Shown in pieces: positions 14,095 through 57,938 of a stretch of 64,000 nucleotides of DNA. The number at the start of each line of letters is the position of its first letter. The stretch's first letter is position 1. Under the pieces are notes generated by a model, which was given only the letters and a program-made list of their open reading frames with translations, did not search any database and was not told where the DNA came from. The translations under genes and the position numbers were made by a program. Location of the stretch: the sequence record LT598654.1; one strand, 5' to 3'.

Positions 14095-14105
14095 AACTGT
14101 AAATA
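14095..14105 (+). promoter_or_regulatory. conserved motif AACTGTAAATA (putative phage promoter)
   Basis: intergenic, after a terminator, 37 nt before the exonuclease ATG; recurs at four other gene starts. Confidence 0.6.
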
Positions 14106-14141
14106 CTCTATATGAATTAACGTCAATGACTATAGGTATTT

Positions 14142-15173
14142 ATGATTTTCCCAACTGCCAAGAAACCTGTTGTTCATCTTATTGATGGAAACAATTGGGT
14201 TAACCGTGCGTTCTATGCGACACCTGTGTTGCACACAGACGACGGCATTCCAACTAACGCAATTAAAGCATTCCATAATATGCTACTGAGTCTGCATAAC
14301 AAGATTCTGAAAGCTGATCAAGTACCTTACATTGCAATATGTTTTGATATTAAGCGCAAAGATACATTCCGCGCTGATGTGTTCAAGAAGTGGCAAAAGC
14401 GTGACCCCGAACTGGTTCAAGCTTTGTTGCCTGCTAGTTCTTCGAAAGAATACAAGGGTAACCGAAACAAAGGTAAGTCAACTCACGAAATAGAAGACCT
14501 ATACGAACAGATACGCATCTGTCGTGAAATGGTTGAGTTAGCAGGCTTCCCTACTTTCGACGGCTACTCTATTGATCAACCAGTAGAAGCTGATGACATT
14601 ATAGGTACTCTTGCTAAGCTTAAAGGCTGCTTGAAACTTATCCAAACACGCGATAAAGATTTTAATCAATGTATAGAGCCTGGTGTAAGAGTGTATCATC
14701 CACCTCAAGCAAACTCAGAAGCCAAGCTTTTGACTATAAAGAACCTGTACGCTCAAACAGGTTTACGTCCTGACCAGTTTATCGAATACTTGATGTTGTT
14801 TGGTGATACGTCTGATAACATTCCGGGTGTTCCAGGTTGTGGTGAAAAGACTGCTACCGCATTACTTAATCGATGGGGAACCATAGAAAACATTCAAGAA
14901 AAAGCAGAGCGTGTTCAGGGCAGAGAGCGTAAGGTAGCACTCACCATTGCAGGTCTTCCCGTAGAGCCTACTGCTAAAGCCAAGAAAGAAGGTGCTAAAC
15001 CTGCTGTTGCTCCGTGTCCTGATTTTGAAGTAACTAGGGAACTAGCAACCATTCGTACTGACGTAAAGAATCTTCCGAAAAGTTATAAGGAACTCGTTAT
15101 GCGAGAACCTAAGTTGAAGAAGTTGAAGAAGTTGAAAAAGCAACTCGAATTTAAAGAACTGTTTTGGGTATAG
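14142..15173 (+). CDS. 5'-3' exonuclease / flap endonuclease (PolI N-terminal family)
   Basis: LIDGNNWVNRAFY, EADDIIGTL, RDKDFNQ and GDTSDNIPGVPGCGEKTA helix-hairpin-helix. Confidence 0.93.
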   Translation: MIFPTAKKPVVHLIDGNNWVNRAFYATPVLHTDDGIPTNAIKAFHNMLLSLHNKILKADQVPYIAICFDIKRKDTFRADVFKKWQKRDPELVQALLPASSSKEYKGNRNKGKSTHEIEDLYEQIRICREMVELAGFPTFDGYSIDQPVEADDIIGTLAKLKGCLKLIQTRDKDFNQCIEPGVRVYHPPQANSEAKLLTIKNLYAQTGLRPDQFIEYLMLFGDTSDNIPGVPGCGEKTATALLNRWGTIENIQEKAERVQGRERKVALTIAGLPVEPTAKAKKEGAKPAVAPCPDFEVTRELATIRTDVKNLPKSYKELVMREPKLKKLKKLKKQLEFKELFWV

Positions 15174-15185
15174 GAGAAACTTAAA

Positions 15186-15812
15186 ATGTATCCACTGGAA
15201 AGTGACACTAACTTGATTCAAAATGATCATCTTTGTAAGCCCGTTATCATAGACATGGCTCTGACTGATGAACAGATTGATCAATTGGTAAACCTCATTA
15301 AAGCAGGAAAAGTTGAAGCCGAGAAAGGTGAGGTAGAAGCTGCTGACGAAGACGGCGAAGACGGCTACGATAGTGAAGCACGTATTGTTGATATGCACTT
15401 CATGGGTGAAGAAGAAACCTATGATCTGGATATTGAATGGCTGTTCCCTGAACTGGAAGCTATTGCTCTTGAAGCGAACAAACTGTTTAACTTTGACCTA
15501 CACGGTTTCCCGGAAACAATCAATGTTCTCCACTACCACACCAAAGACCCGGATGGTGCAGGTCACTTCTATGAACACACCGACATAGGCTCTGGTGACA
15601 TTAGTACGCGCAAGCTTACTATTATTATCCAGCTAAGTAATGAGGAGGAGTACGAAGGTGCTACTCTTAACATTGCTGATTGGGGTGATGCTCCAAAGAC
15701 ACGCGGTACAGCTATCGTGTTTCCTGCTTATATGTCGCACGGTGTTGAACCAATTGAATCCGGTGAGCGTTTTTGTCTTAACGCTTGGGTGCATGGACAC
15801 GCATTCCGATGA
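15186..15812 (+). CDS. 2OG-Fe(II) oxygenase (prolyl-4-hydroxylase-like family)
   Basis: EHTD (HxD), RKLTIIIQLS, SHGV distal His, GERFCL 2OG-binding Arg. Confidence 0.9.
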   Translation: MYPLESDTNLIQNDHLCKPVIIDMALTDEQIDQLVNLIKAGKVEAEKGEVEAADEDGEDGYDSEARIVDMHFMGEEETYDLDIEWLFPELEAIALEANKLFNFDLHGFPETINVLHYHTKDPDGAGHFYEHTDIGSGDISTRKLTIIIQLSNEEEYEGATLNIADWGDAPKTRGTAIVFPAYMSHGVEPIESGERFCLNAWVHGHAFR

Positions 15813-16069
15813 AGATAACAAAAGATGGATTTGAAATAGTAGTAGCTGTTGGGTTGATAGTGAGTTTGGTGCTTGCTGTAGGTCTGTTGATATTTTTCCC
15901 GTTTTCATCAACTGCCGCAATATGGGGGCCAGGATTATTCTTTTTATTCCTGTTAGCTACTAGCTTCACAGGACAGGTTCCCGATTGGAAGAGTGTACTG
16001 ACGGATTTAGCCATTTGGTCAACGATATTCGTAGTCTACGTTTTCGTTTGGTACCAAATAAACAATTAG
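15809..16069 (+). CDS. small multi-pass membrane protein
   Basis: three hydrophobic segments; ATG at 15809 overlaps the upstream stop. Confidence 0.7.
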   Translation: MKITKDGFEIVVAVGLIVSLVLAVGLLIFFPFSSTAAIWGPGLFFLFLLATSFTGQVPDWKSVLTDLAIWSTIFVVYVFVWYQINN

Positions 16070-16072
16070 ATA

Positions 16073-16083
16073 AACTGTAAACA
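16073..16083 (+). promoter_or_regulatory. conserved motif AACTGTAAACA
   Basis: intergenic copy of the AASTGTAAAYA motif. Confidence 0.55.
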
Positions 16084-16097
16084 ATGACTGTACATAA

Positions 16098-16688
16098 ATG
16101 TACGTCAATAATCAAATAAGAAGGAATGCGCAAATGGTATCTGCTACAAAATTAAAACAGCTAACAGCTGGCGGTATCGGATCTAAACAGAACTTTATTC
16201 AGTATCAGGAAGGTAATATCTTAACTGCCTTTACTCGTTATGCTGTACCTAAGTTCGACGTTATGGTTGCGGACACGAACACGCAATTTAATCCTGTGAC
16301 AGGTATTCAAAAAGCTGTCGCTAAATTGTGGCCTGAACTTTGTCTGTTATCCGCAGAAAAAGGCTCGTGTAAGTTGCTTGACGTTCGCGTTGTAAATGAA
16401 AAATTGCCTGACCGTTTCCAAACAGTAGCAATGATCGTCATGCACAATACATCAGGTGAATCCAAAGAAGTTACAGGAGTTAAAAACCTGTTTGTATCTT
16501 TCCGAGAAGCGTTCTCAACTTTACTCGAAGAAGCCGTGCGTTCTAAATTAACTATCGGTATGCCTGTAATCGGTAACCGTAATATCTGGGCTGAACTTGA
16601 AACAATTATCAATGAACTGTGTGACGAGCATGGGTACACGGATATGATTCAAGTCTATCGACCAAAACCTAAAGCAAAGGTAAAGTAA
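16098..16688 (+). CDS. macrodomain-like protein (start possibly 16134)
   Basis: IQYQEGNIL..., DVMVADTN...GIQKAVAKLWPE, IGMPVIG...W..LETII...IQVY follow macrodomain order; Gly-rich loops are degenerate. Confidence 0.6.
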   Translation: MYVNNQIRRNAQMVSATKLKQLTAGGIGSKQNFIQYQEGNILTAFTRYAVPKFDVMVADTNTQFNPVTGIQKAVAKLWPELCLLSAEKGSCKLLDVRVVNEKLPDRFQTVAMIVMHNTSGESKEVTGVKNLFVSFREAFSTLLEEAVRSKLTIGMPVIGNRNIWAELETIINELCDEHGYTDMIQVYRPKPKAKVK

Positions 16689-17344
16689 TGATCGTTGACC
16701 TATATGAAGTCCCAACTGAAAAGCAGTTAAAACAGTTTCTGGTAGCAGATTCAAATAGCATTGTCTCAATCCGACAAAAAGTTGATATTGCACTTGGTTC
16801 AAATACAGCAAATACAGATAATATGTCAGTTGCGTATACCGTTTATACCAGCGTTACTGCGGCTGGGCCTTCTGTAGGTCCTGATCAATCTCTGATGGTA
16901 AACTACGTAGCCCTATCAAATGGCAGCACTGTTTTTGACGACCTTGATATTGATTTAAAGGTAAGAAAAGAGGGTATAAGACAACAAGCTTTGTGTTCCA
17001 TTCGGGCAGGTGTTGTCGATGCTATTATTCATTATGGTATTACGGTTGTTGATCGTGAAGCCGACAGAGACATACTTGTATTTTGTAATGGTGCATTTAC
17101 AGGTATTGATGAACCTCACTCGCTGCCTGCTATACAGGCGATTAACCGAGTTCTTCATCAAGCTGAATTTGATTGTGCTGTTATGCCTTATTCAAGCCTT
17201 AGATTATCAAAGGATGACGAAGGTAATGATTTAATACCAAAGCTGGAAGCTTTTGAAGCTTTCTTGGAGCAACAAAATGAAGACAAAGAAGATAGACAGC
17301 TGGACGTTTCTAATCGCTCCAGCAATACCGAACTTGATCGTTGA
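16688..17344 (+). CDS. hypothetical protein
   Basis: 218-aa ORF, TAATG overlap. Confidence 0.75.
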   Translation: MIVDLYEVPTEKQLKQFLVADSNSIVSIRQKVDIALGSNTANTDNMSVAYTVYTSVTAAGPSVGPDQSLMVNYVALSNGSTVFDDLDIDLKVRKEGIRQQALCSIRAGVVDAIIHYGITVVDREADRDILVFCNGAFTGIDEPHSLPAIQAINRVLHQAEFDCAVMPYSSLRLSKDDEGNDLIPKLEAFEAFLEQQNEDKEDRQLDVSNRSSNTELDR

Positions 17345-17924
17345 TGATTACTACGAGTATCACCAATACATGAACGTTAGCGTTTTGCTGAACTTGTGTA
17401 TTGACCGAGTGGACTTTGAGTACTCGGAAAAGAAAAACAACCTACACATTGTTCTTCGCAATGACCTACCTTACCAACTGATACGGATTTTCTATCGCAA
17501 TCTTGGTAGACCTTGCCCTAAGGCGTATGACGAAGACGCTATCTGTGTAGACTTGTTGATGCTGGTAACCGAGTACGTAGAACAAACCGATTCTGTGATT
17601 CAGATGAAACTTGTTTACGATGACGGTAACACCGAGATACGACAATTCGGCGAACTTGAAGTCGTACTGGAAGCCAGTCGTTTGAGTTTAGGTGAAGAAA
17701 TTAACACGGTTAACCTAGCTGCGGTAATTAACGGACTAAGCATTGCACCTTTTGTAAATCATACATTTCTAACACTTGTGTTTGGTGAGCATTGTACTTA
17801 CCGGGCAAAATCGGAGCAACGATTCGGAATTATTTCTTTTGATGACGGCTCTACCTACGTAGATATTTTCAATCACGTAGATACGCAAAGAATATCTCTT
17901 GCGCGAACCTTGAACATAAGCTAA
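17277..17924 (+). CDS. hypothetical protein
   Basis: ATG at 17277 within ORF 17253-17924. Confidence 0.7.
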   Translation: MKTKKIDSWTFLIAPAIPNLIVDDYYEYHQYMNVSVLLNLCIDRVDFEYSEKKNNLHIVLRNDLPYQLIRIFYRNLGRPCPKAYDEDAICVDLLMLVTEYVEQTDSVIQMKLVYDDGNTEIRQFGELEVVLEASRLSLGEEINTVNLAAVINGLSIAPFVNHTFLTLVFGEHCTYRAKSEQRFGIISFDDGSTYVDIFNHVDTQRISLARTLNIS

Positions 17925-17928
17925 CTAC

Positions 17929-17950
17929 GGGAGGGCACTGCCCTCCCTTT
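17929..17950 (+). terminator. intrinsic terminator
   Basis: gggagggc-act-gccctccc perfect 8-bp stem plus TTT right after a stop codon. Confidence 0.75.
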
Positions 17951-17965
17951 AAGAAACGATCAATA

Positions 17966-18742
17966 ATGAAATCAGTAAAGTTTATCAGATACTTTTTACC
18001 GCTAGGGGAATTCCTAGAGTCATGGAAGTCATACTCAGGGATAGAAGAATTCAAACGGGTAATGACTGGTATACAAGATCGTTTATCTTGCTATACGCTA
18101 CACATCGATGATTCAATCTCAGGTTTATTTCTTCACGACCTAGATACTTATGATTCCTTGGACACCGATGTATTCAGCAAACGTTTTTCTGTAGTAAACT
18201 ACTTGGGCACCAGCTTTAGAAAACATCCGTTTAAAAACAACTCGAATGTAAAACAACGTGTAATGGATATTGTCTCCGAGCTAAAACCTCATTTGCCTCA
18301 TTACCTAGAACACTCTCGTAATATCCAAATGATGGATTCGAGTTTTTATCAGTGTTCTCTGCAATTGCTTTTCAACAAAGCAGACGTTATTCCTATAGTG
18401 TCTGTGTTAGACCAATTAGACGCTGACGGTACACCTGTTTTTGAGCCTCCTGCAGGTGACTCCTGGTTAGAAATACCTTCAGGATTGCTCCACCAGATTA
18501 TCTATAGAGGCGATACTAAACCTCTTATCGATTCAATATACAAGGGTTTGGAATCCAATGAGTTCTCTACCGATGTTATATTGATAGAAACTCTCACCAA
18601 GTTAATGAATGAACTAAAGGCTAACCGGTCTAAGTGGTCAGCTTATGACATTCAGGAACAAGAAAATAAAATTCATACAATACTTCAACTTGTTAAGCGG
18701 TCAGGTTTGAATGTTGATGCACTAATGCAGAGACTTGGTTAG
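17966..18742 (+). CDS. hypothetical protein
   Basis: 258-aa ORF. Confidence 0.75.
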   Translation: MKSVKFIRYFLPLGEFLESWKSYSGIEEFKRVMTGIQDRLSCYTLHIDDSISGLFLHDLDTYDSLDTDVFSKRFSVVNYLGTSFRKHPFKNNSNVKQRVMDIVSELKPHLPHYLEHSRNIQMMDSSFYQCSLQLLFNKADVIPIVSVLDQLDADGTPVFEPPAGDSWLEIPSGLLHQIIYRGDTKPLIDSIYKGLESNEFSTDVILIETLTKLMNELKANRSKWSAYDIQEQENKIHTILQLVKRSGLNVDALMQRLG

Positions 18743-18760
18743 TGCCGACTGGAGAAATTA

Positions 18761-19441
18761 ATGATGGAAGGAAACGAATTGAAGCAAGCATTACGTGCCA
18801 TTAATTGTGACTTAGACAAGTCGCTTGGTACACTATCTAACTACCGTGCTTTGAGTCCTAAGATAGAACTCTTTGTTGGTTTGATGGGAATGCTACAAGG
18901 GATGGCAACAGAACTTTCGGATTCAGCAAGTGACATACTGACAGAGTTAAGCCAGTTGCCTGATAACTTTTCCGAAGTCCTAAATCATGTTAATTTAACA
19001 GTGTCAAAAAACAAAGACATTGTTAGTATTACATACGTTCCAAAAGAAGATGGTTTATCTATGGAACATAGTGCTACAGTGTCCGACACAAACTTCGTGT
19101 GTGCAATGCTTAAAGTGTACTCACGAATAATAGGAGACACTGCTATGACTAAAACTCGATACTTCCACAAACGTATGTCAGGGACTAATACTGGAAAGGG
19201 ATTTGAAACGGCTGTAACCTTCCCAACCGATATGAATACCTACTTACTCTTCCAATCGCATGGTACGGAAGAAGAATACCCAATCGGTGGGCTAGAAGCC
19301 GGTTCTTCTATTCGTTCTCTGTGTAAAGTTGTCTCTATAGACCGAGAGGAAGGTGTGTTGAAGCTAGACTGGTTAGTGCCTTTCTTTGGAAACCTTTATG
19401 TAGTAGGAGATTCGGAAGATGACAACGGAAAGAATAGTTAG
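18761..19441 (+). CDS. hypothetical protein
   Basis: 226-aa ORF with GGAG SD. Confidence 0.75.
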   Translation: MMEGNELKQALRAINCDLDKSLGTLSNYRALSPKIELFVGLMGMLQGMATELSDSASDILTELSQLPDNFSEVLNHVNLTVSKNKDIVSITYVPKEDGLSMEHSATVSDTNFVCAMLKVYSRIIGDTAMTKTRYFHKRMSGTNTGKGFETAVTFPTDMNTYLLFQSHGTEEEYPIGGLEAGSSIRSLCKVVSIDREEGVLKLDWLVPFFGNLYVVGDSEDDNGKNS

Positions 19442-20045
19442 CTATTTTGAAACGCTAAAACGTAACCCTCGTTCTTATGAGCACATACGTAAACGCCTTA
19501 ACCTGACTTGCCAGGAACTCAACACTCTGTTTGTAGACTCAATACCAGAGGCAAAGCAGCTTGAAGAAAGTTGTGCAACCAGTTACGTTAAGTACGGAGT
19601 ATATCCAACACCAAGTAGTACTATAACACTGAAAGTACTTGCACACGATGCTGACCTTCCTGCTTTTATTTTGGCAATTGCCTACAAAAAGTTTGGCATG
19701 TGTGATGAACTTCTGGATTACCTTGACGTACCCTTTATTCGTCTTTTTGATTCGGTGTTTACCCAGCAGCATTTCTTTAAACTATTCGGTATTAAAAAGA
19801 CTGATAAGTTTTTGCGTATCTATATAGGTAACCGCTTCAATATAATGAAAGCTATTGAGGTTTATTGCAAAGCTGAGAAAATTTCTATCGATGTTCGTGA
19901 GCATTATGCGAAGATGGCAGTCATTACCGAAAAGCAATTCTATGAGGCGCACTCACCTAAAGCTGGCCGCAATCGTAAATCAAAGTCCGTGCAAGAGTTT
20001 GAGGATAGTGATATGGAATCCTTCTTAGGAGAAGAACATGAGTAA
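19419..20045 (+). CDS. hypothetical protein
   Basis: 208-aa ORF overlapping neighbours. Confidence 0.75.
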   Translation: MTTERIVSYFETLKRNPRSYEHIRKRLNLTCQELNTLFVDSIPEAKQLEESCATSYVKYGVYPTPSSTITLKVLAHDADLPAFILAIAYKKFGMCDELLDYLDVPFIRLFDSVFTQQHFFKLFGIKKTDKFLRIYIGNRFNIMKAIEVYCKAEKISIDVREHYAKMAVITEKQFYEAHSPKAGRNRKSKSVQEFEDSDMESFLGEEHE

Positions 20046-20619
20046 GTATATCAAACCCATGGATTTCAAGTTGTCTAACAACTTTCGTTTCTACGAGTTG
20101 GTGCGCAGTACCGAAGCCGACCGTCTAGGTATCGATAACACTGCCTTTGTTACCGAAGAAATTCTGGCTAACGCTGTATACGTTGCCGAGACTGTCCTTG
20201 AACCTATACGTAAACTTATTCGCCGACCTTTTACCCCAAATAGCTGGTTTCGCTGTGAAGAACTCGAATTCGTGCTCTGTACACGTAGCTTCTTTAATGG
20301 GTTGGCTAGGCAGGGTGTAGAGGGGGTAGAACGCGATAGAACCCACCTTCTGTACCCTGTAATTTCGTTACTTCCGACTGAATACGCTAGCTATTGGGAC
20401 GCATATTTCGAAACAAAGCAGCATCCTAAAGGAGAAGCTGTAGACTATGAGGTCTCAGGCGTTTCTAACTTAGACCTGTTTGAAATGGCGCGTGACAATA
20501 TCCGGTATGACCAACTCATATTGGAATTCTATCGTAAAGAAGCTGGTCCTAACTCTGGTTGGGTTCATACAAGTACAAAGCGTAAAGGTGCTAACCGTTC
20601 GCAAATTATTCGGTATTGA
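20038..20619 (+). CDS. peptidase M15-type endolysin (Zn D-Ala-D-Ala/L-Ala-D-Glu peptidase fold)
   Basis: LSNNF...E, LEPIR, SWFRC, QHPKGEAVD (H...D Zn ligands), YDQLILE, GWVH (third ligand). Confidence 0.85.
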   Translation: MSKYIKPMDFKLSNNFRFYELVRSTEADRLGIDNTAFVTEEILANAVYVAETVLEPIRKLIRRPFTPNSWFRCEELEFVLCTRSFFNGLARQGVEGVERDRTHLLYPVISLLPTEYASYWDAYFETKQHPKGEAVDYEVSGVSNLDLFEMARDNIRYDQLILEFYRKEAGPNSGWVHTSTKRKGANRSQIIRY

Positions 20620-20622
20620 TTT

Positions 20623-20952
20623 ATGGTTCCTCAAGCAAATCTCGAAGGTGCGGAGACAGTGATTGCAACTACCCCTGCACAGAAAAACCTCGTAGACAAC
20701 ATCGACCCTGAACGTATTTATACGACAGTAGGTATTTACTTAGACAAATCGTTTAAGTCGAATGGTGTTAAAGGCGAGGAACTCAAAGGTCATATCGAGT
20801 ACAACCTAGACCTACGACCCGGTCGTGCTTTCTTTGTTGATGGTGTGTGCTTCAATTCAGGTTACTACGAAACTGAGGAAGACGCGCAGGCAGTGTTTAA
20901 CGAGAAGTGTTCTAAGATCAAATTCAGCATGGACACCAGGCCCTATGTCTAA
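20623..20952 (+). CDS. hypothetical phage protein
   Basis: 109-aa ORF; HIEYN...RPGRAFFVDG. Confidence 0.7.
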   Translation: MVPQANLEGAETVIATTPAQKNLVDNIDPERIYTTVGIYLDKSFKSNGVKGEELKGHIEYNLDLRPGRAFFVDGVCFNSGYYETEEDAQAVFNEKCSKIKFSMDTRPYV

Positions 20953-20970
20953 ACGTCAATTAGGTATTCT

Positions 20971-21282
20971 TTGTTGTGTGATATTCGTTGTGGTATCGAT
21001 GCTATGAGAAAGAAGAAGCAGAAAAGGAAGGCTAAACTTAGCCTAAGGGAAAGTGAACGTAGACGCGCTCAGTCCAAGATAGATACTGAGGATATTGATG
21101 TGGGATGGTCAGAAGGTTCTTTTGATTTAAGTCCTACCGCTTTGGATATTCCGTCTTTAGATTTAGGGGCCTACTCTGACCCCTCTGATACCAAGACTAT
21201 GGTTGCACTATATCCACAGGATGATGTAATAAGTGCTGCCTTCCTATCTGCTAGATTGCGACGGCTAGGGCTAAAGCCGTAA
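20971..21282 (+). CDS. hypothetical protein (start possibly ATG at 21004)
   Basis: basic N-terminus; overlaps the convergent gene by 32 bp. Confidence 0.55.
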   Translation: MLCDIRCGIDAMRKKKQKRKAKLSLRESERRRAQSKIDTEDIDVGWSEGSFDLSPTALDIPSLDLGAYSDPSDTKTMVALYPQDDVISAAFLSARLRRLGLKP

Positions 21283-21835
21283 TAACTCGCCAAGTAAAAC
21301 TATCTACAGCGTTAACCTTCTGTTGGCGCTGTAGTTCTTCCCTGTAGTACTTAGAGAATTCCTCTATTCTTTTTGCTCGGTACGCTTCTAAGCGTAACAC
21401 CCTTAGCAACTGATTCCTTTCTTCTACGCTTAACTCCTGTACATTGTTCAACTGGCTAACCAGCTTTGCGTTCTCTGCACCTGCTTGGTACACATCACGT
21501 ATTTTGTATAGGGTAGGCGTATCAATTAACGTGTATAGCGTGTCTGATTCTGTGGCTGGAGGTAAACCTGATACGTTATCCTCTGCCTTACCAACAAACA
21601 CTTCTTCAAAATAGACTATACCGTCTTTTTCTACAACTCGTACAATCTTTGCATTCTTTACTTTCGATTCTAAGTCAGTTGGATAATCAAAAGGCTTAGT
21701 GTCTTTATGCTCAATCAATTCCAGGTCTAATAAATTAGTCACCTGTTCTATTTCAGCATTTGGTATTTCGGTACTGTCTAACATTGCGCACCCGGTCATC
21801 ATAATAGACACCGTGACCAGTAACCATCTTACCAC
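21251..21835 (-). CDS. outer-membrane lipoprotein, o-spanin candidate
   Basis: lipobox-like MMTG-C at residue 16, coiled coil, hydrophobic C-terminus; follows a TM plus coiled-coil gene. Confidence 0.65.
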   Translation of the reverse strand: MVRWLLVTVSIMMTGCAMLDSTEIPNAEIEQVTNLLDLELIEHKDTKPFDYPTDLESKVKNAKIVRVVEKDGIVYFEEVFVGKAEDNVSGLPPATESDTLYTLIDTPTLYKIRDVYQAGAENAKLVSQLNNVQELSVEERNQLLRVLRLEAYRAKRIEEFSKYYREELQRQQKVNAVDSFTWRVITALALAVAI

Positions 21836-22164
21836 TGTTTACCCTTGAACGCTTCAAGGTTTTCTAAGTCCGACTTTGATTCATCGTACTTAGGCTGTTC
21901 TTCTAATTTCTTTTCTGCAAGGATACGCTTGTTATGAAGCATTTCCTTTTCTTCTTCAAGCTTTTTTATGGCTTGTTGTTGATCAGCTAGCGCCTGTTTG
22001 GTCTGCTCGTCATCAATATCTCGGATTCCTTTTTCAAGTTCACCTACCCGACGACCTGCCTTACCTCCGGTCAGTGCAATAGCTACACCAGTTAAGATAA
22101 GACCTAGACCTGCTAATAGTGCCAGCCAATACTTTTTGTACCAGGGCGTGTTGTCCGTTGTCAT
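21829..22164 (-). CDS. i-spanin (Rz-like) candidate
   Basis: single N-terminal TM then charged coiled coil; overlaps the lipoprotein gene. Confidence 0.65.
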   Translation of the reverse strand: MTTDNTPWYKKYWLALLAGLGLILTGVAIALTGGKAGRRVGELEKGIRDIDDEQTKQALADQQQAIKKLEEEKEMLHNKRILAEKKLEEQPKYDESKSDLENLEAFKGKQW

Positions 22165-22487
22165 TTTTGAATTACCTTCTTAGACGCAGGAGCTTTATTG
22201 AACATACTGTCTACTACATAACCAATAGCAAAGAAAGTAAGCAAACTAGCTTCGGTATTAGTCATTAGTATACCAATGTATGAACTAATTGCAGCAGTAA
22301 CCGCTGTAAAGGTTTGCGATTTATGGGTTAACCAGTACGTGTCCCAATCCGCTTCGAATCGAATACACTTTTTAATATAGTGAACCACTACACCACATGC
22401 AGTTATCATAAAGCTAAGTAACAAATATCCCCATGAATAAATCAATAAGGGACCAAGTAAATCTGAAAGGTTTTTGATTTCTAACAT
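22161..22487 (-). CDS. holin candidate
   Basis: about three hydrophobic segments, basic C-tail; ATG at 22487 with GAGGAG SD. Confidence 0.55.
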   Translation of the reverse strand: MLEIKNLSDLLGPLLIYSWGYLLLSFMITACGVVVHYIKKCIRFEADWDTYWLTHKSQTFTAVTAAISSYIGILMTNTEASLLTFFAIGYVVDSMFNKAPASKKVIQK

Positions 22488-22542
22488 TGGTGTACTCCTC
22501 AGGTTGGTGCAGCCCAAATGAGCTGCAACTTAACCTAAACCT

Positions 22543-22824: not shown

Positions 22825-22832
22825 ATCAATTC

Positions 22833-23647: not shown

Positions 23648-23657
23648 AGTGCTCTCC

Positions 23658-24275: not shown

Positions 24276-24300
24276 GTCTACTCCTAGTCTAAACGGATGA

Positions 24301-24322
24301 AGGGTGAGCCTAAGCCCACCCT
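24301..24322 (-). terminator. stem-loop after the major fibre gene (weak terminator or stabiliser)
   Basis: agggtgggc-ttag-gctcaccct; the G-U pair forms only on the - strand; short U tract. Confidence 0.55.
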
Positions 24323-24340
24323 ACCTTTTCTCAAACTAGA

Positions 24341-44114: not shown

Positions 44115-44151
44115 CTATATAACTTCCATTATGATTTCTATAAAATTAGAG

Positions 44152-50498: not shown

Positions 50499-50995
50499 AA
50501 GCTTCGTAATCCAAATTCAATATTTTCTTTTTTAATGTTTAAGCTAGGAACAGTCACAACCAACTTAACAAAGAAGTGTTGATTTTCTGTGTCAGGTATT
50601 ACTTGGATTTCACTAACTACTATTCGACGGTCACCAGTTCGTGCATTACCTAATGCGTTTGTAAGTTCAGAACGGATTCGTGTAGCAGTCGTGTAATCAA
50701 GTGGGTCAAACAATAGAGATTCAATCGCTGTACCGAAGTTAGGTCTGAACCATCTGCTTCTTTTAGGAGTGCCGATTATCATCCAAAGACTTTGCTTAAC
50801 CGAATCAATGTCTCTAACTTCATCGTTAGGTTTTGAGTTGGTGTAAAGGTTTACATCAGAGTAGGTGTACGCTAACTGTTGAGGACTTGACGTATCAACG
50901 TAGACGATATTAGGTGACCATACTTCTGTGTTGTCTTGAGTGGTTGTACCACTAACCTTTTCCCATTGTGCTATATTGACGGGAGAACGTGCCAT
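50495..50995 (-). CDS. baseplate wedge gp25/gpW-like protein
   Basis: VKQSL..II.TP.RSR.FRPNFG..I..LLFDP...D.RI motif. Confidence 0.9.
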   Translation of the reverse strand: MARSPVNIAQWEKVSGTTTQDNTEVWSPNIVYVDTSSPQQLAYTYSDVNLYTNSKPNDEVRDIDSVKQSLWMIIGTPKRSRWFRPNFGTAIESLLFDPLDYTTATRIRSELTNALGNARTGDRRIVVSEIQVIPDTENQHFFVKLVVTVPSLNIKKENIEFGLRSL

Positions 50996-51282
50996 TAACC
51001 ACCAGCCTTAACAGTAGGAGAACCTTGCCCTGCTGTGTCACCACAACTTGTTTTGTCACCTGTTCTGTGTACGCCTTTGCCGTTTACTTTAACGGTAGAG
51101 CTAACTTTGGCAGCATTAGGTTGGTGACAAGAACCTGACAAACAATGTAGCTTGTAAGTGTCACCTTGTCTAACAACGCCTTTGCCATTGGCGAACACAT
51201 TTGTACTGGCTTTGATAGTAGGAGTCGGTGGAAAACCGTGACCTACAGACATATCGCCAAGACGCATAACAGATTGTGCCAT
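50995..51282 (-). CDS. PAAR-like spike tip protein
   Basis: RLGD..VGH, VFANGK.VVRQGD, V.VNGK..HR.GD..SCG; ATG at 51282 with AAGGA SD. Confidence 0.9.
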   Translation of the reverse strand: MAQSVMRLGDMSVGHGFPPTPTIKASTNVFANGKGVVRQGDTYKLHCLSGSCHQPNAAKVSSTVKVNGKGVHRTGDKTSCGDTAGQGSPTVKAGG

Positions 51283-51302
51283 AGCAAGATTCCTTTTCAA
51301 AA

Positions 51303-51313
51303 AAGTGTAAACA
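51303..51313 (+). promoter_or_regulatory. conserved motif AAGTGTAAACA at the divergent junction
   Basis: intergenic; 37 nt upstream of ATG 51350, the same spacing as at 14095. Confidence 0.6.
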
Positions 51314-51349
51314 TACTAATAAATTAGCATATCACGAGGTCTTAGAAAT

Positions 51350-51895
51350 ATGGATAATCAAGTTCAACTAGCAGTGGCTAAACAAGGTTGTGCTTATCAT
51401 TGGTATCATACACTCGCTGAAATACTTCATCCTAAAGACCGACTAAGTGCGGTTAAAGTGGGGTTCACGCAAGAGGGTGCAGAAGTAGGCAGCATCCATG
51501 TAACTGTGCCTGAGTTTAACCAGTTTGTGGTTTTGTGCCGAGCGCGTCAAAAGTTTGAACTGGCTCAGTACCTTACTACTATGTTGGAAGAATTTAGTCA
51601 GGTAGTAATGGACGAAGAACATGATATAGGCAAATGCTTAAAAGGGTTTGTTGATCAGGCTATGCCGATAACAAACCAGAGCATGACTATTATCCAAGAT
51701 AGTCTTGACAGAATAGAAGTGCAACACTTCCATGCCGAACAAACTAACTCGTATCTGTTACTTATGGAAATCATAGCGTTGGACAGTAATGTGCTCGAAG
51801 AGGCAGGTATTATAGAACTGATTGAACAGGATGCAGAGAAGTTCAGCAACCTTACTAAATTTATTGAAGAACTCACAACGGAAAAACCTTTATGA
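51350..51895 (+). CDS. hypothetical protein
   Basis: 181-aa ORF, GAGG SD. Confidence 0.75.
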   Translation: MDNQVQLAVAKQGCAYHWYHTLAEILHPKDRLSAVKVGFTQEGAEVGSIHVTVPEFNQFVVLCRARQKFELAQYLTTMLEEFSQVVMDEEHDIGKCLKGFVDQAMPITNQSMTIIQDSLDRIEVQHFHAEQTNSYLLLMEIIALDSNVLEEAGIIELIEQDAEKFSNLTKFIEELTTEKPL

Positions 51896-52200
51896 ATATA
51901 ACAGAAAAGCTTGGACTATGGCTTATGGCGATAGGTACTAACCTATATTTAAGAGGTGGGTCTGAGCGCAGAACTGAAAAGGCTCAACGCTTTATGGATG
52001 CCTACAACGGCGAACTATTAGAGTGTGCTGTAGTGTATGCAGGTGGTCATGGATTTTCTGATAACCAAATGAAAAGCGCACAGTGGTCTGCTGACGTTAT
52101 TCTAGGAATGCTGAGGTCTAGTGATGTTAAACTGGACACCGACAGACCTTTATCCGCATTTGAACAAGATGCCAAATTCGATAAGGAAACCTCGCAATGA
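51892..52200 (+). CDS. hypothetical protein
   Basis: ATGA overlaps on both ends. Confidence 0.7.
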   Translation: MNITEKLGLWLMAIGTNLYLRGGSERRTEKAQRFMDAYNGELLECAVVYAGGHGFSDNQMKSAQWSADVILGMLRSSDVKLDTDRPLSAFEQDAKFDKETSQ

Positions 52201-53192
52201 GCAAAACCAAGATTAATATCCTGATGTGTTACCAAGAACCTGTCCCTAGCAGCAAACAACGAAAGTTTGTTACTTACTGTCCTTATCTACAGTCGGTTCC
52301 TGAGGCGCAAGCATTTATTGAAAATCGCTTTTCTCATTTGGCTCGTGATGGATATGTAAGTCGTGTGTTTTTAGAAATTGTGCTAACCCTGTTAACCAAC
52401 GATCTTTACCGTGTATTTTTATATCCGGTGGATGATACTAAAGGTTACACCAAATGCCCTCAGATAAGTTCTGTTTCTTCAATGGATTTGGATTTAGACC
52501 TTGTATCCTCGGATGACGATTACGCAGCAATAGAAAACTTTGTGTACGATACCCTACTGAACACAAGCTGGGTTGCAGGTTTCTATTCTGATAACTTTAA
52601 GATGCAAGGTAACAGTCCAAACGTCAAGAAAGATATAAGTTGCTCAGGGCGAGATTTGAAACCTAACGTAGGTCTAAACTTTCTGTATATGTTCCCAGCG
52701 GACTTACCTAACTTGGAACGATTGAAAGCTTTCATATCAAAGCGAAGCTTGAATGCACCAAAGTCGTTGGATACTTCTTCTTTGGGGACAGTACTAGGTA
52801 ATTCGGAGTACTCTATTACCAAAGGGAACTTAAAATCTACGCTGGTTCTGCCTGACGAATACCAACAAGCGTGTATTCAAGCCGAGCAGTTGCTAACAGC
52901 ATTCTTAACCAAGCTTGCTGAAAAATGTAAACGTGAAGTGTCTGATGACCAGATAAAACTGTTTACTATCGACCGAACCGAAGCATTCATTCCGACTCGT
53001 CGAACCTATTACCGTGTAGCGTTTACCTACAAGCATACCGACGAACAGTTGTACGATTTAGGTTTTATGTTCGACTTCCACCCCATTGAGATAGAGTCGT
53101 CTAACTCTAATTTCTTGGTTCGTGTTTTTGAAGATAAGTTCGCCGAACTTGTCGATAGTATTGAAAAATTAAATGAAAGAGATAACCAATGA
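52197..53192 (+). CDS. hypothetical protein
   Basis: 331-aa ORF. Confidence 0.75.
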   Translation: MSKTKINILMCYQEPVPSSKQRKFVTYCPYLQSVPEAQAFIENRFSHLARDGYVSRVFLEIVLTLLTNDLYRVFLYPVDDTKGYTKCPQISSVSSMDLDLDLVSSDDDYAAIENFVYDTLLNTSWVAGFYSDNFKMQGNSPNVKKDISCSGRDLKPNVGLNFLYMFPADLPNLERLKAFISKRSLNAPKSLDTSSLGTVLGNSEYSITKGNLKSTLVLPDEYQQACIQAEQLLTAFLTKLAEKCKREVSDDQIKLFTIDRTEAFIPTRRTYYRVAFTYKHTDEQLYDLGFMFDFHPIEIESSNSNFLVRVFEDKFAELVDSIEKLNERDNQ

Positions 53193-53560
53193 ACGATAGC
53201 TTTTTATTTTTAACCACAGCCCCCAAGTCTAAAAGCGGTGAAGTACATACTCCACTGATCAATGTTGATCGTGAAACGTTAGACGTTGAAATGCCTACGC
53301 TGGCTAAAGAGTTAAAAGAAGTTGAAGGCTTAAACTTTGATAACTTTAAAACCTTCTCGGTTCTTAGTCTGCAATCACTGCCTGTAACGGACAGCGACTT
53401 TGCAAAACTAAAACCTTGTTTGTTTAAAACCATATTCGTGGATACGTACTCTGCGAAAATAGCTTGGGAATTTGAGGCTGACTACTCACGCGCACGTGGT
53501 ACAAAAAACGGAGCGTTGCGTGGGTTTACCACAACTCCCAACATACGATTCTGGGTGTGA
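53189..53560 (+). CDS. hypothetical protein
   Basis: 123-aa ORF, ATGA overlap. Confidence 0.7.
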   Translation: MNDSFLFLTTAPKSKSGEVHTPLINVDRETLDVEMPTLAKELKEVEGLNFDNFKTFSVLSLQSLPVTDSDFAKLKPCLFKTIFVDTYSAKIAWEFEADYSRARGTKNGALRGFTTTPNIRFWV

Positions 53561-53561
53561 T

Positions 53562-54143
53562 ATGCCGCAAAATATAGTCCGCGAAATTCTGGATGACTAC
53601 TGCCATCTTCGCATAAAATCAAGTGAACCTGCTTTACCTGTGGTTGGAACCCAGCCTGTATACTCGGCGGGTAACGTTCACAAGCTAGACTTAGGTGGGC
53701 AGGTTTTGACTAAAGATGGAATGATGGATATTCAAGCCAACTTTGAAATCAGTGTATCCAACACTGGTGAAGAAATCATTGAAAAGATGGGTAACTTGTT
53801 GAGACAGACTGCCCGACGACTTTACGGAGACCATATGATTAACGCAGAAACTTTCTTTGGTGTAGATGAAGCCACAGTAGACCAAGCTGTTAGCGTTCTC
53901 ACCAATGCTTTAAAAAATGAGCAAAGTAACCTTCATTGGCTTGATGTAGACAGAGCTGAAAAGAAAGTCACGGTTAACTTCCATCAGTCTAAGGGTAACA
54001 AAGAAATATTTGATCGTGTCAACTTCGATGCACTAAACAAACGTATTGCATCTTTCGGTTGGAAAGCGTCACCTAGTTCTTGGGTAGCGAGTCAACGCGA
54101 CAACCCGTTTGAATTTAAAATCATCTTGGAGGTAGTAGGATGA
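53562..54143 (+). CDS. hypothetical protein
   Basis: ATG at 53562 within ORF 53472-54143. Confidence 0.7.
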   Translation: MPQNIVREILDDYCHLRIKSSEPALPVVGTQPVYSAGNVHKLDLGGQVLTKDGMMDIQANFEISVSNTGEEIIEKMGNLLRQTARRLYGDHMINAETFFGVDEATVDQAVSVLTNALKNEQSNLHWLDVDRAEKKVTVNFHQSKGNKEIFDRVNFDALNKRIASFGWKASPSSWVASQRDNPFEFKIILEVVG

Positions 54144-54535
54144 GCCAGGCATTTAAAGGCTTAACAGGGGTTAAAACGTCTTGTCAGTTCCAAACAATTC
54201 AAGTCCATATTCTTGATTTTGTTATGCAGTTCTCTACAACTCTCACCAGTTCTGTGGTGCAGGGAAAAACACTGTCTATGAAGTTAGGTATCGATTCAAA
54301 GTATATCTTACCTCTGGAAGCAGCGCAGGTTGAAGTGCTAGACAGTGATGACCTACCTTCTAGCCAATTGCAGGCTACTTTGGATAATGATAAGTTAAAC
54401 CTTACTTTTATCGATGTACCAAAAGACATTGCCCGTATTCGTATCAACGTACCTGTTGCCCGTGCGGATGGTAACCACATCGAAACCGACGAAATGGACA
54501 GTGTTAGCTTATCTGTTGACACTGACCTAAATTGA
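54140..54535 (+). CDS. hypothetical beta-rich protein
   Basis: GGAGG SD, ATGA overlap. Confidence 0.7.
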   Translation: MSQAFKGLTGVKTSCQFQTIQVHILDFVMQFSTTLTSSVVQGKTLSMKLGIDSKYILPLEAAQVEVLDSDDLPSSQLQATLDNDKLNLTFIDVPKDIARIRINVPVARADGNHIETDEMDSVSLSVDTDLN

Positions 54536-54783
54536 TTCTTGAAGTGGACTCCGATAATCCTGATATGATTCTTATACTTGTGGACAAACCTAACGTCGAT
54601 CAAGTATTTGAATCTGCCGATACGGAGCAAGACATTATTGACCCGCGCATGTTAAAAGGGACTCTTAAATTCTGTAAGCGTGTGCGTGTAATTAGTGAAG
54701 CTACATTCCGAACTCTACCTGAGTTTCAACACAACTTTGGAATTCCCCCTAAATTTCCTAACGGAGAAAACAATGGACAATAG
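54532..54783 (+). CDS. hypothetical protein
   Basis: TTGA overlap start, 83 aa. Confidence 0.55.
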   Translation: MILEVDSDNPDMILILVDKPNVDQVFESADTEQDIIDPRMLKGTLKFCKRVRVISEATFRTLPEFQHNFGIPPKFPNGENNGQ

Positions 54784-55303
54784 CGAATCAACAGGCTTAG
54801 CTAAAATTCAAGACCGGGCACGTAACCGAGTAAGAGAAGTATTTGCAGAAGTCTTCACTGACCAAGAACTTGACCAAATGCTTAAAGCAGAAATCGAGGC
54901 GTTCTTTAAGAAACCTGCCGAGAAGATGAACCTGGTGAAGGTTAATCATCGTGCGTATCAAGGTCACGGTCAACCTGAAAAGTATGTAACCGAAGCAACC
55001 GAAGTAAAACTGTCTCCATTCCAATTGATTGTTTGGCAGTTCTGTTCTCAGCAGGTGTTGGATATGTTGACTAAGAACATGGAGCAACCTGAGTTCACTG
55101 CACGAGATACTTTCCTAACCCTGCAAAATGCAGACGGTTCCCTCTCAAACTTTATGGTCACTGAACTTGGTGAAGAACTGCAAAAACGTTCCGAGAATAT
55201 GGCTAAAGAAAACATGCACCTGATGTTTGCTCAAATGTTTGCCGGGATGTTCAAGCAAAGCAAAGACGAAATGATGATAGAATTCTCCCAGCGTTTTGGT
55301 TGA
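54773..55303 (+). CDS. hypothetical protein
   Basis: ATG at 54773 with GGAG SD within ORF 54695-55303. Confidence 0.75.
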   Translation: MDNSESTGLAKIQDRARNRVREVFAEVFTDQELDQMLKAEIEAFFKKPAEKMNLVKVNHRAYQGHGQPEKYVTEATEVKLSPFQLIVWQFCSQQVLDMLTKNMEQPEFTARDTFLTLQNADGSLSNFMVTELGEELQKRSENMAKENMHLMFAQMFAGMFKQSKDEMMIEFSQRFG

Positions 55304-55328
55304 TCTCGTTTTGTGTCTTCCTAGAATC

Positions 55329-55426
55329 GGCATTTCCTTGCGTAGATTAGAGGTTTGTCGCAGAAAAATGCCATTAATCTCGTATTATACTAAAGTATAA
55401 GGTACTCTTTGTAATTTTAAAGAGTA
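55329..55426. other. structured intergenic region with three inverted repeats
   Basis: ggcattt/aaatgcc long imperfect stem; ttatact-aa-agtataa; tactcttt-N8-aaagagta. Confidence 0.7.
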
Positions 55427-55443
55427 ACTACTGGGGTATAAAT

Positions 55444-56346
55444 ATGGAAATCGATTCATTTTTGGAGAACACTTTAGGATTCGAGGTGCGCACTGGTCGC
55501 CCTGTATCTAAAGTCGTATCCTTTTTACCAAGTGGTTACGGTGACGAGTATGTACTAGGAAAATGGCATATCCATTTACTAGATAGAGTCACACAAGACG
55601 GTCTACAAAAGCTGGGAGTCAAGATTGAAATAAATAGCCTTGACCACCATCACGTTGTTGTTTACTGGGGTTACGTTAAGTACGATGTTAGCGAATTTAA
55701 AAAGCTGTTGCATTCGTGTACTGATATTTTCGACCATGCCGAAGATGACGTTCTCTGTGAACGGGTAGTCCTAAACTACTCAGACCAATTGTTCCATAAC
55801 AGTGCATTCATATCTGAATACAACATTTGGCACTTCGACGACTTGTTATCTTCGTATGTGCCGGACGGATTCAATGTGTTGGTACCTGATGATATTGCAG
55901 AAGAAACAAGTATTGATTTAATAAACGAGTTTCTTTTTGATATGGACGGACCGAGTGTTTCATCTAACTCCTTTGATATGATTCCTAGATTCCCTGAAAG
56001 TTTTACGGAGCATTTTAACGAGGTAGGCGTAAACGTTCTTGATGTTAACTCAGAAGGTAGGCTTTTTATAAGCAAGAACTTTGTTAAAGAAAAGACGTTG
56101 CGTTTAAAAACAATGAACCAGGTATTCATTGTACGTTTAGCTCTAAAAGCTCTTAGGGATAATAGAGTACCACAAGCTGTGAAATTTCTAAAAGAGGTAG
56201 GTTTGGTAAAAGATATTGTCATACTAAAAGACATACACAACCAAACCAGAATTTCGTTTTTAAATGATACTTGGGATGACGTTGAGGTATTTGGAGATTT
56301 TGATGAAATGTTATTGCACGTAAATAAAACTTACGGCAACTTATGA
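55444..56346 (+). CDS. hypothetical protein
   Basis: 300-aa AT-rich ORF. Confidence 0.75.
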   Translation: MEIDSFLENTLGFEVRTGRPVSKVVSFLPSGYGDEYVLGKWHIHLLDRVTQDGLQKLGVKIEINSLDHHHVVVYWGYVKYDVSEFKKLLHSCTDIFDHAEDDVLCERVVLNYSDQLFHNSAFISEYNIWHFDDLLSSYVPDGFNVLVPDDIAEETSIDLINEFLFDMDGPSVSSNSFDMIPRFPESFTEHFNEVGVNVLDVNSEGRLFISKNFVKEKTLRLKTMNQVFIVRLALKALRDNRVPQAVKFLKEVGLVKDIVILKDIHNQTRISFLNDTWDDVEVFGDFDEMLLHVNKTYGNL

Positions 56347-56597
56347 TAACCAATGAAGATATTTGTAGAATTAATGCGTGTCTACGAAAGCAGTTCTCAA
56401 AAGCAGATTTAGTTCTGCACTCGCATAGTCTCCGCCAAGATTACAAAGCGGATAATTTGGATTTCGTTGAATTAGCAATGTCCCTAGAGGAGGAATTTAA
56501 GGTAGATATTGACGATGATGTATTTTTTAATCTTGAAAGCATAGAGGACTTATACAACTTTATCAGTACCTTACTGGAGAATACTTCTAAGTATTAA
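56343..56597 (+). CDS. acyl-carrier-protein-like, phosphopantetheine Ser replaced by Asn
   Basis: KADNLDFVELAMSLEEEFKVDIDD versus canonical GADSLDTVELVMALEEEF. Confidence 0.85.
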   Translation: MITNEDICRINACLRKQFSKADLVLHSHSLRQDYKADNLDFVELAMSLEEEFKVDIDDDVFFNLESIEDLYNFISTLLENTSKY

Positions 56598-56615
56598 AAC
56601 TGTAAACTGTAAGCA
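56598..56615 (+). promoter_or_regulatory. conserved motif AACTGTAAACT followed by a partial repeat TGTAAGCA
   Basis: intergenic copy upstream of ATG 56638. Confidence 0.5.
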
Positions 56616-56637
56616 TAACTACCTTACAGGAATCGGT

Positions 56638-57015
56638 ATGAATACTTTGGACTTACTTCAAACTTACGATAAATATCTCGTAAAACTTCAAAATTCAATT
56701 TCCCAACCAGAACAAGTCCTCTGGCAAGCACTAGAGGACTTCGCCCTTCCAAAGACTTCTTTCCTTAATATCCTGGACGTATACGATTTAGTGGAACACT
56801 CAGTACGCAGTGCCAAGCTAGAGTCGCATCTGATTAACTCAACCTATGAGCTTATTAATCGCCTTCGTGTGGAATTCAATGGTACAATATCACTACTTGC
56901 GGTCAGTGACTTCGTCCAGTGCCTTCAAAACTTTTCAGATACGCAAAACATTCCCAAGCGTATAGACCTAATCGTGAGACAGTTAAGAAATGACCTCGTT
57001 AAAGCAGTCTGTTAA
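56638..57015 (+). CDS. hypothetical helical protein
   Basis: 125-aa ORF, AGGA SD. Confidence 0.7.
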   Translation: MNTLDLLQTYDKYLVKLQNSISQPEQVLWQALEDFALPKTSFLNILDVYDLVEHSVRSAKLESHLINSTYELINRLRVEFNGTISLLAVSDFVQCLQNFSDTQNIPKRIDLIVRQLRNDLVKAVC

Positions 57016-57104
57016 AATTTTCTTTGCTTGTACTTTTATATTTATGGTACTTGCAATTTTCTACGTAGGCTACCACGTAGCTTGCTACATTAGGAAGATA
57101 AAAA

Positions 57105-57929
57105 ATGCTGAGTAACTATCCCTTATTAGCAATAAGCTTTATGAGCCAAGCTTTTGAAATGGCTGCGTTGAGTAGTGCGCGTCGTCGAAAAACGGGTGCA
57201 GGTGTTTACCGTCAGTTAGAAGGTAAATATTTTCAACCTGTATCCAACGGAATTAATGGAACCCGAACAGGTACACCTAACTATTGTGAGAACATGGACG
57301 GCACAAGCAGAGGTCGTAAAGTAATACATGCCGAACAGAACTGTCTTATTAAAATGATGACAACAGGTGTCGCTACTGAGGGCTGCACTCTGGTCACTAC
57401 CTTCGTTCCCTGTGAGGTGTGCTGCGAGTCTATCATCGATGCCAAAATTCGCGAGGTAGTCTACTGTGAAGACAGCATTAACGAAAGCAAGAAAGCTTCT
57501 ATAGGTAAACTAGAAGAAGTAGGTATTCGAGTACACCGCGTTACCAAACATGAAGTAATTGAATACAAGATGATGGTTCTTGATGGTCTTCGCACAGGAA
57601 ATAAATTTCTAGGTGAGCCTGTTGAGCAGGAGTACCATGACTTTGCTAACCATATAAGAGCACTTACCTCAGAGCAGGTGGAACTGGTCAAGAAGAACAT
57701 AGAGAACACCATTCACCAACGTAACTATTCTCCTACTAAAACGTTTGCGTTAGATACAAACATTATCGAACTCTCTCAGGTAACTAACAGTGAAGACCTG
57801 TTGAAATGGATTGAAGACAGCTACGACTATCTTATGGAGATAGAGCACCGAGTAAGTACAACCCATCCAATGATGCGTATATCAACCTCGTTGCCTGAGT
57901 TGTTGACGTATTACGTAAAAATCAAATAA
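57105..57929 (+). CDS. dCMP deaminase family protein with C-terminal extension
   Basis: NG...G..N.CE, HAEQN and PCEVC Zn motifs. Confidence 0.88.
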   Translation: MLSNYPLLAISFMSQAFEMAALSSARRRKTGAGVYRQLEGKYFQPVSNGINGTRTGTPNYCENMDGTSRGRKVIHAEQNCLIKMMTTGVATEGCTLVTTFVPCEVCCESIIDAKIREVVYCEDSINESKKASIGKLEEVGIRVHRVTKHEVIEYKMMVLDGLRTGNKFLGEPVEQEYHDFANHIRALTSEQVELVKKNIENTIHQRNYSPTKTFALDTNIIELSQVTNSEDLLKWIEDSYDYLMEIEHRVSTTHPMMRISTSLPELLTYYVKIK

Positions 57930-57938
57930 CTGTAAATA
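57928..57938 (+). promoter_or_regulatory. conserved motif AACTGTAAATA
   Basis: overlaps the deaminase stop, just upstream of the ACP gene. Confidence 0.5.

Follow-up and report, generated by a model that had tools for sequence, protein, structure and literature searches.

A conserved single-block motif as a probable replication-phase promoter class in the jumbo phage NCTB and its relatives

Introduction

The 257,877 bp circular genome of NCTB, a marine jumbo phage from surface water, has remained poorly annotated, and about 70% of its genes are 'hypothetical'. In 64,000 nucleotides (nt) of this genome, bases 62001-126000 of record LT598654.1 (hereafter the window; its bases 1-20000 are identical to 62001-82000 of the record), a short motif, AASTGTAAAYA, had been pointed out at five places upstream of + strand gene clusters. 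It was originally predicted to be a candidate middle promoter read by a phage sigma factor. The locus therefore raises the question whether these copies are promoters, which set of genes they serve and which protein reads them.

NCTB has been assembled from a decaying Trichodesmium bloom and grouped with Lu11, PaBG, the Dickeya JA phages and the Erwinia phage Y3 (PMC7412058). In our study, the whole NCTB genome was rebuilt from its record with genes called by a simple greedy open reading frame (ORF) method, and six relatives (Lu11, PaBG, Y3, JA11, fHe-Yen9-02 and one IMG/VR contig of 200 kb) were scanned for the motif. All coordinates are those of the window unless marked 'genome'. 'Class A' denotes the promoter class of the AAAA[C/G]TGTAAA[C/T]A block and 'class B' the class of the sequence TAATTTA.

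Results

Distribution and conservation of the motif

AASTGTAAAYA has four matches in the window (14095, 16073, 51303 and 57928), all on the + strand, where shuffled sequences lead one to expect 0.38 and none of 100 shuffles reached four. The fifth copy, at 56598, is matched once the last base is relaxed to W. Inspection of the sequence bore out all five positions, their location in gaps or at gene junctions and their sense orientation to the downstream gene. The finer points of the original prediction also hold: in two copies, the last base of the motif precedes an ATG by exactly 37 nt (14105 and 14142, 51313 and 51350), the copy at 14095 starts behind a terminator-like hairpin, and the copy at 51303 lies within the 67-nt divergent gap 51283-51349. 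The 11-mer was found to be correct as an occurrence and too short as a description of the element, since the aligned NCTB sites form one longer contiguous block of 13 bases, AAAA[C/G]TGTAAA[C/T][A/T].

Over the whole NCTB genome, the 9-mer A[CG]TGTAAA[CT] occurs 25 times. Every copy has a co-oriented gene start downstream, within 120 nt in 18 cases, and one copy, on the - strand, stands before the lone - strand primase gene amid a + strand region. A weight-matrix scan at a cut-off of >=11 bits returned 40 sites, 38 sense and 2 antisense to the local genes; one of the two antisense sites falls in a spurious ORF produced by the greedy gene calls. The intergenic enrichment expected on the original prediction was clearly seen, with 20 of the 40 sites in intergenic DNA as compared to 6.7% of the genome bases (p ~1e-13). 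Another 18 lie in sense orientation within genes, where several of the strongest occupy the 3' end of the upstream gene. Measured from the 7-nt core, the start codon follows after a median of 37 nt; most copies lie 25-40 nt ahead of it, with some at 120 to >350 nt from the next start. A layout of terminator, motif and gene recurs, and in several cases the T-run of the terminator stops just 10-25 nt short of the motif. An unbiased enrichment search of 7-mers and 8-mers upstream of genes also placed the motif among the top words; it was found in this way in five of the six genomes analysed, the PaBG list having only GAAACTGT, and the top upstream 8-mers in Y3 and JA11 are CTGTAAAT and TCTGTAAA.

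The core 8-mer [CG]TGTAAA[CT] was also seen to be about two-fold depleted inside NCTB genes on both strands (10 and 12 occurrences, where codon shuffles predict 18.4 and 21.7, respectively). The same depletion is present in the IMG/VR relative and absent from the other four genomes, the Lu11 gene calls being poor, and it is weak evidence.

The motif is not confined to NCTB. Counts of the 10-mer AASTGTAAAY, each set against a reversed-pattern control in the same genome, were 21 against 2 in NCTB, 25 against 1 in Lu11, 13 against 0 in the IMG/VR relative (200 kb), 13 against 0 in fHe-Yen9-02, 12 against 1 in JA11, 11 against 2 in PaBG (56% G+C) and 8 against 1 in Y3. Moreover, the motif lies within 200 nt of 26 of the 58 orthologs of motif-bearing NCTB genes as compared to 20 of 408 for the other genes (odds ratio 15.8, p ~1e-14). 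In case of the primase, SSB, DNA polymerase I and the gene adjacent to GTP cyclohydrolase I, the upstream DNA cannot be aligned across the relatives save for the motif, which is found there at 36-60 nt, often straight after a terminator.

As for the lineage itself, relatives of about 93% identity to NCTB across the full 6 kb of 12501-18500 were found on contigs of 30-126 kb from marine and aquaculture metagenomes of 2019-2025, so the lineage is widespread and persistent. A low-complexity acidic (Asp/Glu-coding) repeat at 13120-13190 draws many unrelated metagenome contigs and inflates the depth there.

Anatomy of the block

Pooling 92 sites of promoter-like context, taken from six genomes, gave a logo whose positions are counted from the core C/G. 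Between -25 and -5 its information stays below 0.15 bits, and a -35-like partner is absent from this stretch. A secondary signal appears downstream at +14/+15: of the 92 sites, 80 have a purine at +15, mostly with T before it, and none has C. As a pyrimidine at -1 followed by a purine at +1 is the usual start signature, this T-purine step, 7 nt past the block, looks like the transcription start site. A start at this step would place TAAAYA at -12 to -7 with the TG and the A-tract directly upstream, so that the block would act as a -10-type single-element promoter giving 5' leaders of about 20-30 nt.

The logo further contains a weakly conserved T-A-T-A patch downstream of the block. It is not a sigma70 -10 hexamer, because T is not preferred in the column that would correspond to T-7; this argues against a layout of the T4 MotA type. 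A reading of the sites as promoters of the extracytoplasmic function (ECF) type, with 'AAC' as -35 and the TATA patch as -10, does not hold, as the two would lie about 6 bp too close to each other.

Genes served and the other promoter classes

The features of the window and the related features elsewhere are collected in Table 1.

Table 1. Promoter-like motifs, terminator and candidate sigma factors (window coordinates unless stated)
Feature	Position	Strand	Remarks
Class A copy AAAACTGTAAATA	14093-14105	+	19.5 bits; predicted start ~14112 (tA); before 5'-3' exonuclease gene 14142-15173
Class A copy TAAACTGTAAACA	16071-16083	+	18.2 bits; predicted start ~16090 (tG); before cluster beginning 16098/16134
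Class A copy AAAAGTGTAAACA	51301-51313	+	20.5 bits; divergent gap; before + strand cluster from 51350
Class A copy AAAACTGTAAACT	56596-56608	+	19.7 bits; predicted start ~56615 (cA); before ORF 56638-57015
Class A copy ATAACTGTAAATA	57926-57938	+	16.8 bits; overlaps 3' end of dCMP deaminase gene
Intrinsic-terminator-like hairpin	14057-14082	+	9 pairs and T-rich tail; closes upstream unit 13 nt ahead of the motif
Class B	8977-8983	+	before portal operon
Class B	44142-44148	-	before fibre-like gene
Class B	51320-51326	-	faces PAAR gene 50995-51282
Class B	55412-55418	+	
~60-bp element	genome 16836, 26619, 27574, 39417, 46418, 47063, 47565, 58920	all +	last copy ~3.1 kb before window start
Lu11 promoter features coinciding with pattern matches	Lu11 114217-114232, 124262-124277, 124340-124355, 130482-130497, 218805-218820, 234364-234379		
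BN7874_019	genome 12900-13955, outside window		RpoD-derived sigma
ORF 1966-3132	1966-3132	+	candidate second sigma-like factor; PaBG gp112 ortholog; residues ~141-241 resemble sigma domain 2

Genome-wide, the genes behind class A include those for primase, a TGT/DpdA-like protein, SSB, gyrA, a 5'-3' exonuclease, QueD and DNA polymerase I, and one further target adjoins the clamp loader gene. The expectation that the motif precedes replication and metabolic genes rather than virion genes is thus borne out over the whole genome, with the virion genes carrying TAATTTA instead. NCTB also has a 7-deazaguanine set (genome 9565-11160, 158914-159978, 214534-215250 and 222350-223225) of DpdA/TGT-like, QueD, GTP cyclohydrolase I and QueE genes, a combination which suggests 7-deazaguanine modification of the phage DNA. 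The class A motif lies directly upstream of the TGT-like and QueD genes, and GTP cyclohydrolase I is one gene beyond a third site.

Within the window, only two targets have an assignable function. The first is the exonuclease gene, whose product matches the Pfam families 5_3_exonuc_N and 5_3_exonuc and which is predicted from the sequence to be driven by the copy before it; the second is an acyl carrier protein (ACP)-like gene, 57945-58193. The copy in the divergent gap is likewise predicted to drive the + strand cluster that follows it. In the cluster behind 16071-16083, the ORFs are without a match in the protein-family searches. The copy at 56598 has its first bases inside the stop codon of another ACP-like ORF (56343-56597), and for the copy at 57928 the predicted start (t-A, 57944/57945) coincides with the A of the ATG of ORF 57945-58193. 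A transcript from the latter copy would be leaderless, skipping a GAGG at 57939-57942. Around the window copies, matches to the sigma70-type consensus were at chance level only.

The two ACP-like ORFs code for small proteins matching the phosphopantetheine-attachment (acyl carrier protein) family, and they flank the dCMP deaminase gene. Two other + strand ORFs, 56638-57015 and 9009-9221, are absent from the GenBank annotation, and a promoter-like motif precedes both, the class A copy at 56598 in the first case and the class B copy at 8977 in the second.

Class B, TAATTTA(A/T), is a single block found 25-40 nt before virion genes, its targets being the portal operon, three tail-sheath-type genes, the PAAR gene and a fibre-like gene. 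Gene-upstream regions of Lu11, Y3, JA11 and the IMG/VR relative are enriched in it as well (as TAATTTAA or GCTAATTT), and it is likely to be a late promoter class. A third class consists of eight to nine copies of an element of about 60 bp on the + strand, spread over genome 16.8-59 kb among small early-type genes. Each has a T-run, then GGTACAAAA and in most copies an extended -10 TGCTATAAT, TGCTATA(A/C)T; this is likely to be an early promoter class of the host sigma70. The NCTB genome has, then, three putative promoter classes, among which class A marks the replication-type set.

In the divergent gap 51283-51349, a class A and a class B block occupy opposite strands back-to-back, with 3 nt between them (AAGTGTAAACA tac TAATAAATTA gca). 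This arrangement is found again before the primase gene of NCTB (genome 6583-6698) and of Lu11, and it suggests coupled or competing divergent promoters.

Candidate readers of the motif

By Pfam, the NCTB genome has no multisubunit RNA polymerase domains. NCTB has been placed among the jumbo phages which lack a polymerase and encode sigma factors (PMC7824862). A phage sigma factor, as called for by the original prediction, does exist, but it is BN7874_019, encoded outside the window, and the ORF 1966-3132 that had been put forward is only weakly sigma-like.

BN7874_019 gave a match at 1e-102 to phrog_17569, 'RNA polymerase sigma factor', and shares 39% identity with PaBG gp118; its Lu11 ortholog is gp174. 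Its family has at least 92 clusters, many with a match to Sigma70_r2 (PF04542), and the family profile matched only region 2 of RpoD/SigA in PDB. The Pfam Sigma70_r2 model itself matches nothing in the NCTB genome, BN7874_019 included. A structure model was built on the 99%-identical homolog P0008, with a predicted local distance difference test (pLDDT) score of 81. The top 50 Foldseek hits of this model were all sigma70, and VIA-align 2 superposed 221 residues on 1sig_A (Z 12.2), corresponding to sigma70 113-445, which spans region 1.2, the non-conserved region and region 2. The remaining ~110 residues after region 2 have no clear match, and no solved sigma aligns well with them. From a manual reading of the alignment we infer that the recognition helix of region 4.2, which binds the -35 element, may be missing from BN7874_019, and this would suit a promoter without a -35 element.

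In case of ORF 1966-3132, the PaBG authors had flagged the ortholog gp112 as a possible sigma on a weak HHpred match. The model of the NCTB ORF product (pLDDT 66) was ranked by VIA-align 2 closest to sigma domain 2 structures, with scores that are common for helical proteins. The best was the SigE N-terminal domain (Z 8.5, root-mean-square deviation 2.4, 79 of 80 residues), a score usual among helical proteins, and T4 gp55 (chain 7d7d_F) gave Z 6.6, again in the range common for them. Atlas gave weak sigma leads. Pfam and PDB sequence searches gave no match, Foldseek hits were not significant, and the hhalign comparison with the phage-sigma family had a probability of 1%. The modelled protein can be called weakly sigma-domain-2-like. 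The number of conserved sigma-like proteins, two, matches that of the conserved phage-specific promoter classes.

Discussion

The position and orientation of the motif over the genome, the repeated layout of terminator, motif and gene and the conservation before orthologs in distant relatives lead us to read class A as a promoter, and this reading is very probably correct. The motif would be the recognition element of a phage-specific promoter class common to NCTB, Lu11, PaBG, Y3, the Dickeya JA phages, fHe-Yen9-02 and marine relatives. As it serves genes of replication, recombination, nucleotide metabolism and DNA modification, class A most likely forms a replication-phase ('middle') regulon, and it would sit between the sigma70-type early class and the TAATTTA virion class. 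The specificity most likely comes from a phage-encoded sigma acting on the host core polymerase, because no phage polymerase was detected and the same motif is used in phages of different hosts. BN7874_019 would be the best candidate for the reader, with ORF 1966-3132 as the alternative. Taken as a whole, the statement that class A is a replication-phase promoter class read through a phage sigma is probable, less firmly so than its promoter nature.

Several points weigh against this statement. The timing has been taken from the functions of the genes alone. The sole RNA-labelled run with the phage, a metatranscriptome of 2016 which covers 99% of the test stretch, gave long Logan contigs of flat depth spanning genes and gaps, in which neither starts nor ends can be seen, and its signal probably reflects DNA. 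Three of the five target clusters in the window (16134, 51350 and 56638) have no assignable function in family searches. The predicted start of the 57928 copy, at 57945, falls on the A of an ATG, past the Shine-Dalgarno-like GAGG, which makes this copy either leaderless or the weakest of the five. The search for a T7-type polymerase had no working positive control, and very divergent subunits of the phiKZ type could escape Pfam. Further, the motif is tied to neither of the sigma-like proteins in particular, and the TAATTTA class needs a reader too.

Among the other explanations, the one which survives best is that the motif binds a MotA-like phage activator redirecting the host sigma70 holoenzyme, with no phage sigma doing the reading. 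Every known host of the group is a gammaproteobacterium and their sigma70 factors are similar, so that conservation across hosts would be compatible with it; the weak T-A-T-A patch behind the motif also speaks for it, and in Lu11 a 'putative transcriptional regulator' gene lies directly upstream of one motif copy. The patch, however, lacks the T preference of a sigma70 -10 hexamer and lies just 5 nt past the block, as against about 12 bp between a MotA box and its -10. The motif is moreover unlike a MotA box, and the group has conserved a sigma of its own. Such an appropriation of the host sigma is therefore considered unlikely.

A constant orientation and nearness to gene starts would also fit an operator, bound by a phage repressor or another DNA-binding regulator beside promoters that went unrecognised. 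The block is non-palindromic and nothing else is conserved within 25 nt upstream of it. The 10-25 nt which remain between the T-run of a terminator and the motif at several sites leave no room for a further promoter, and an operator is more doubtful still than the activator just described. We regard a signal at the RNA level, in the form of a site for transcript processing or of a translational operator within the 5' leader, as very improbable: copies right behind strong terminators would rarely be transcribed from upstream, some copies are 120 to >350 nt away from the next start, and both the independent Lu11 annotation and the T-purine step favour initiation, although strand specificity and a usual place 25-40 nt ahead of start codons are what such a signal would also have. 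Chance or a compositional artefact, suggested by the AT-richness of both the intergenic DNA and the motif, is refuted by the controls, namely 0-2 reversed matches per genome against 8-25 observed (PaBG at 56% G+C included), an orientation of 38:2 and the retention of the motif before orthologs.

For the whole group of Lu11, PaBG, NCTB and Y3, a two-step cascade can tentatively be speculated, in which two phage sigma-like proteins each read their own single block without a -35 element; we hold this to be possible rather than probable. The two proteins would be the RpoD-derived sigma with its reduced C-terminus and the extremely divergent protein of the ORF 1966-3132 family, and the blocks would be CTGTAAAY before replication genes and TAATTTA before virion genes, the two standing back-to-back in divergent gaps. 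If true, the cascade would run parallel to the MotA/gp55 scheme of T4 and be independent of it, conserved across hosts from Pseudomonas to marine bacteria.

The outcome is first of all a regulatory map for a poorly annotated genome, where genes behind class A can provisionally be assigned to the replication phase and genes behind TAATTTA to virion assembly. A promoter predicted once, in Lu11, is found to be group-wide and host-independent, which points to one or more conserved phage sigmas as its reader. For culturable relatives, these blocks could provide short, portable, phage-controlled promoter parts. The concepts are unchanged, as textbooks already describe phage-specific middle and late promoters that are read with phage sigmas.

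Comparison with known systems

The core had originally been likened to the T4 late promoter, TATAAATA, which gp55 reads together with gp33 and the gp45 clamp. The likeness stands for sequence and layout: both are a single block in the -10 region without a -35 element, the NCTB 8-mer TGTAAATA is one base off, and a start 7 nt downstream is predicted for class A, as in T4. Membership of the T4 late class does not stand, because the second base and the gene set differ. The second base was G in 25 of the 25 seed copies, where it had been fixed by the seed pattern A[CG]TGTAAA[CT], and the last-but-one base was C in 18 of 25. Unlike the T4 late promoter, class A also has a conserved upstream A-tract with a C/G, and it stands before replication, nucleotide and DNA-modification genes, not before virion genes.

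T4 middle promoters combine a MotA box near -30 with a sigma70 -10 (TAnnnT) about 12 bp downstream and work with AsiA. Class A shares their niche, i.e. the genes of replication and nucleotide metabolism which are switched on after the early phase. It has neither a MotA-box sequence nor a properly spaced sigma70 -10, its block being contiguous with the -10 region, and the group of Lu11, PaBG, NCTB and Y3 carries its own sigma. Extended -10 promoters of sigma70 (TGnTATAAT) resemble class A in having TG just upstream of a hexamer beginning with TA and in dispensing with the -35. In class A, however, the TG directly adjoins the hexamer (TG-TAAAYA), its register being shifted by one base, and the hexamer ends in A and not in T; in NCTB it is the early class (TGCTATAAT) that is of the extended -10 type.

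The closest system is found in the phage Lu11. In the open literature, no paper naming the motif was found, the announcement of Lu11 and the papers on NCTB and Y3 being outside that search. The Lu11 record (NC_017972) has 16-nt features of the kind 'regulatory, promoter, putative middle/late promoter', and as these mark the same sites (Table 1), the class had already been predicted in a relative. Those features are themselves predictions covering only part of the Lu11 copies, and the NCTB record is without regulatory features. They agree with class A in the identical core (CTGTAAAT plus 8 nt), in strand logic and in gene neighbourhoods, for example between the sigma and SSB genes. NCTB differs in that the first core base may be G instead of C and that C is preferred as the last but one (TGTAAAC). 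It has in common with the Lu11-type promoters the core with a semi-conserved stretch, the intergenic co-oriented placement and the presence before orthologs. The class A signal is hence real but ordinary, and through it NCTB joins a kind of promoter that has already been annotated.

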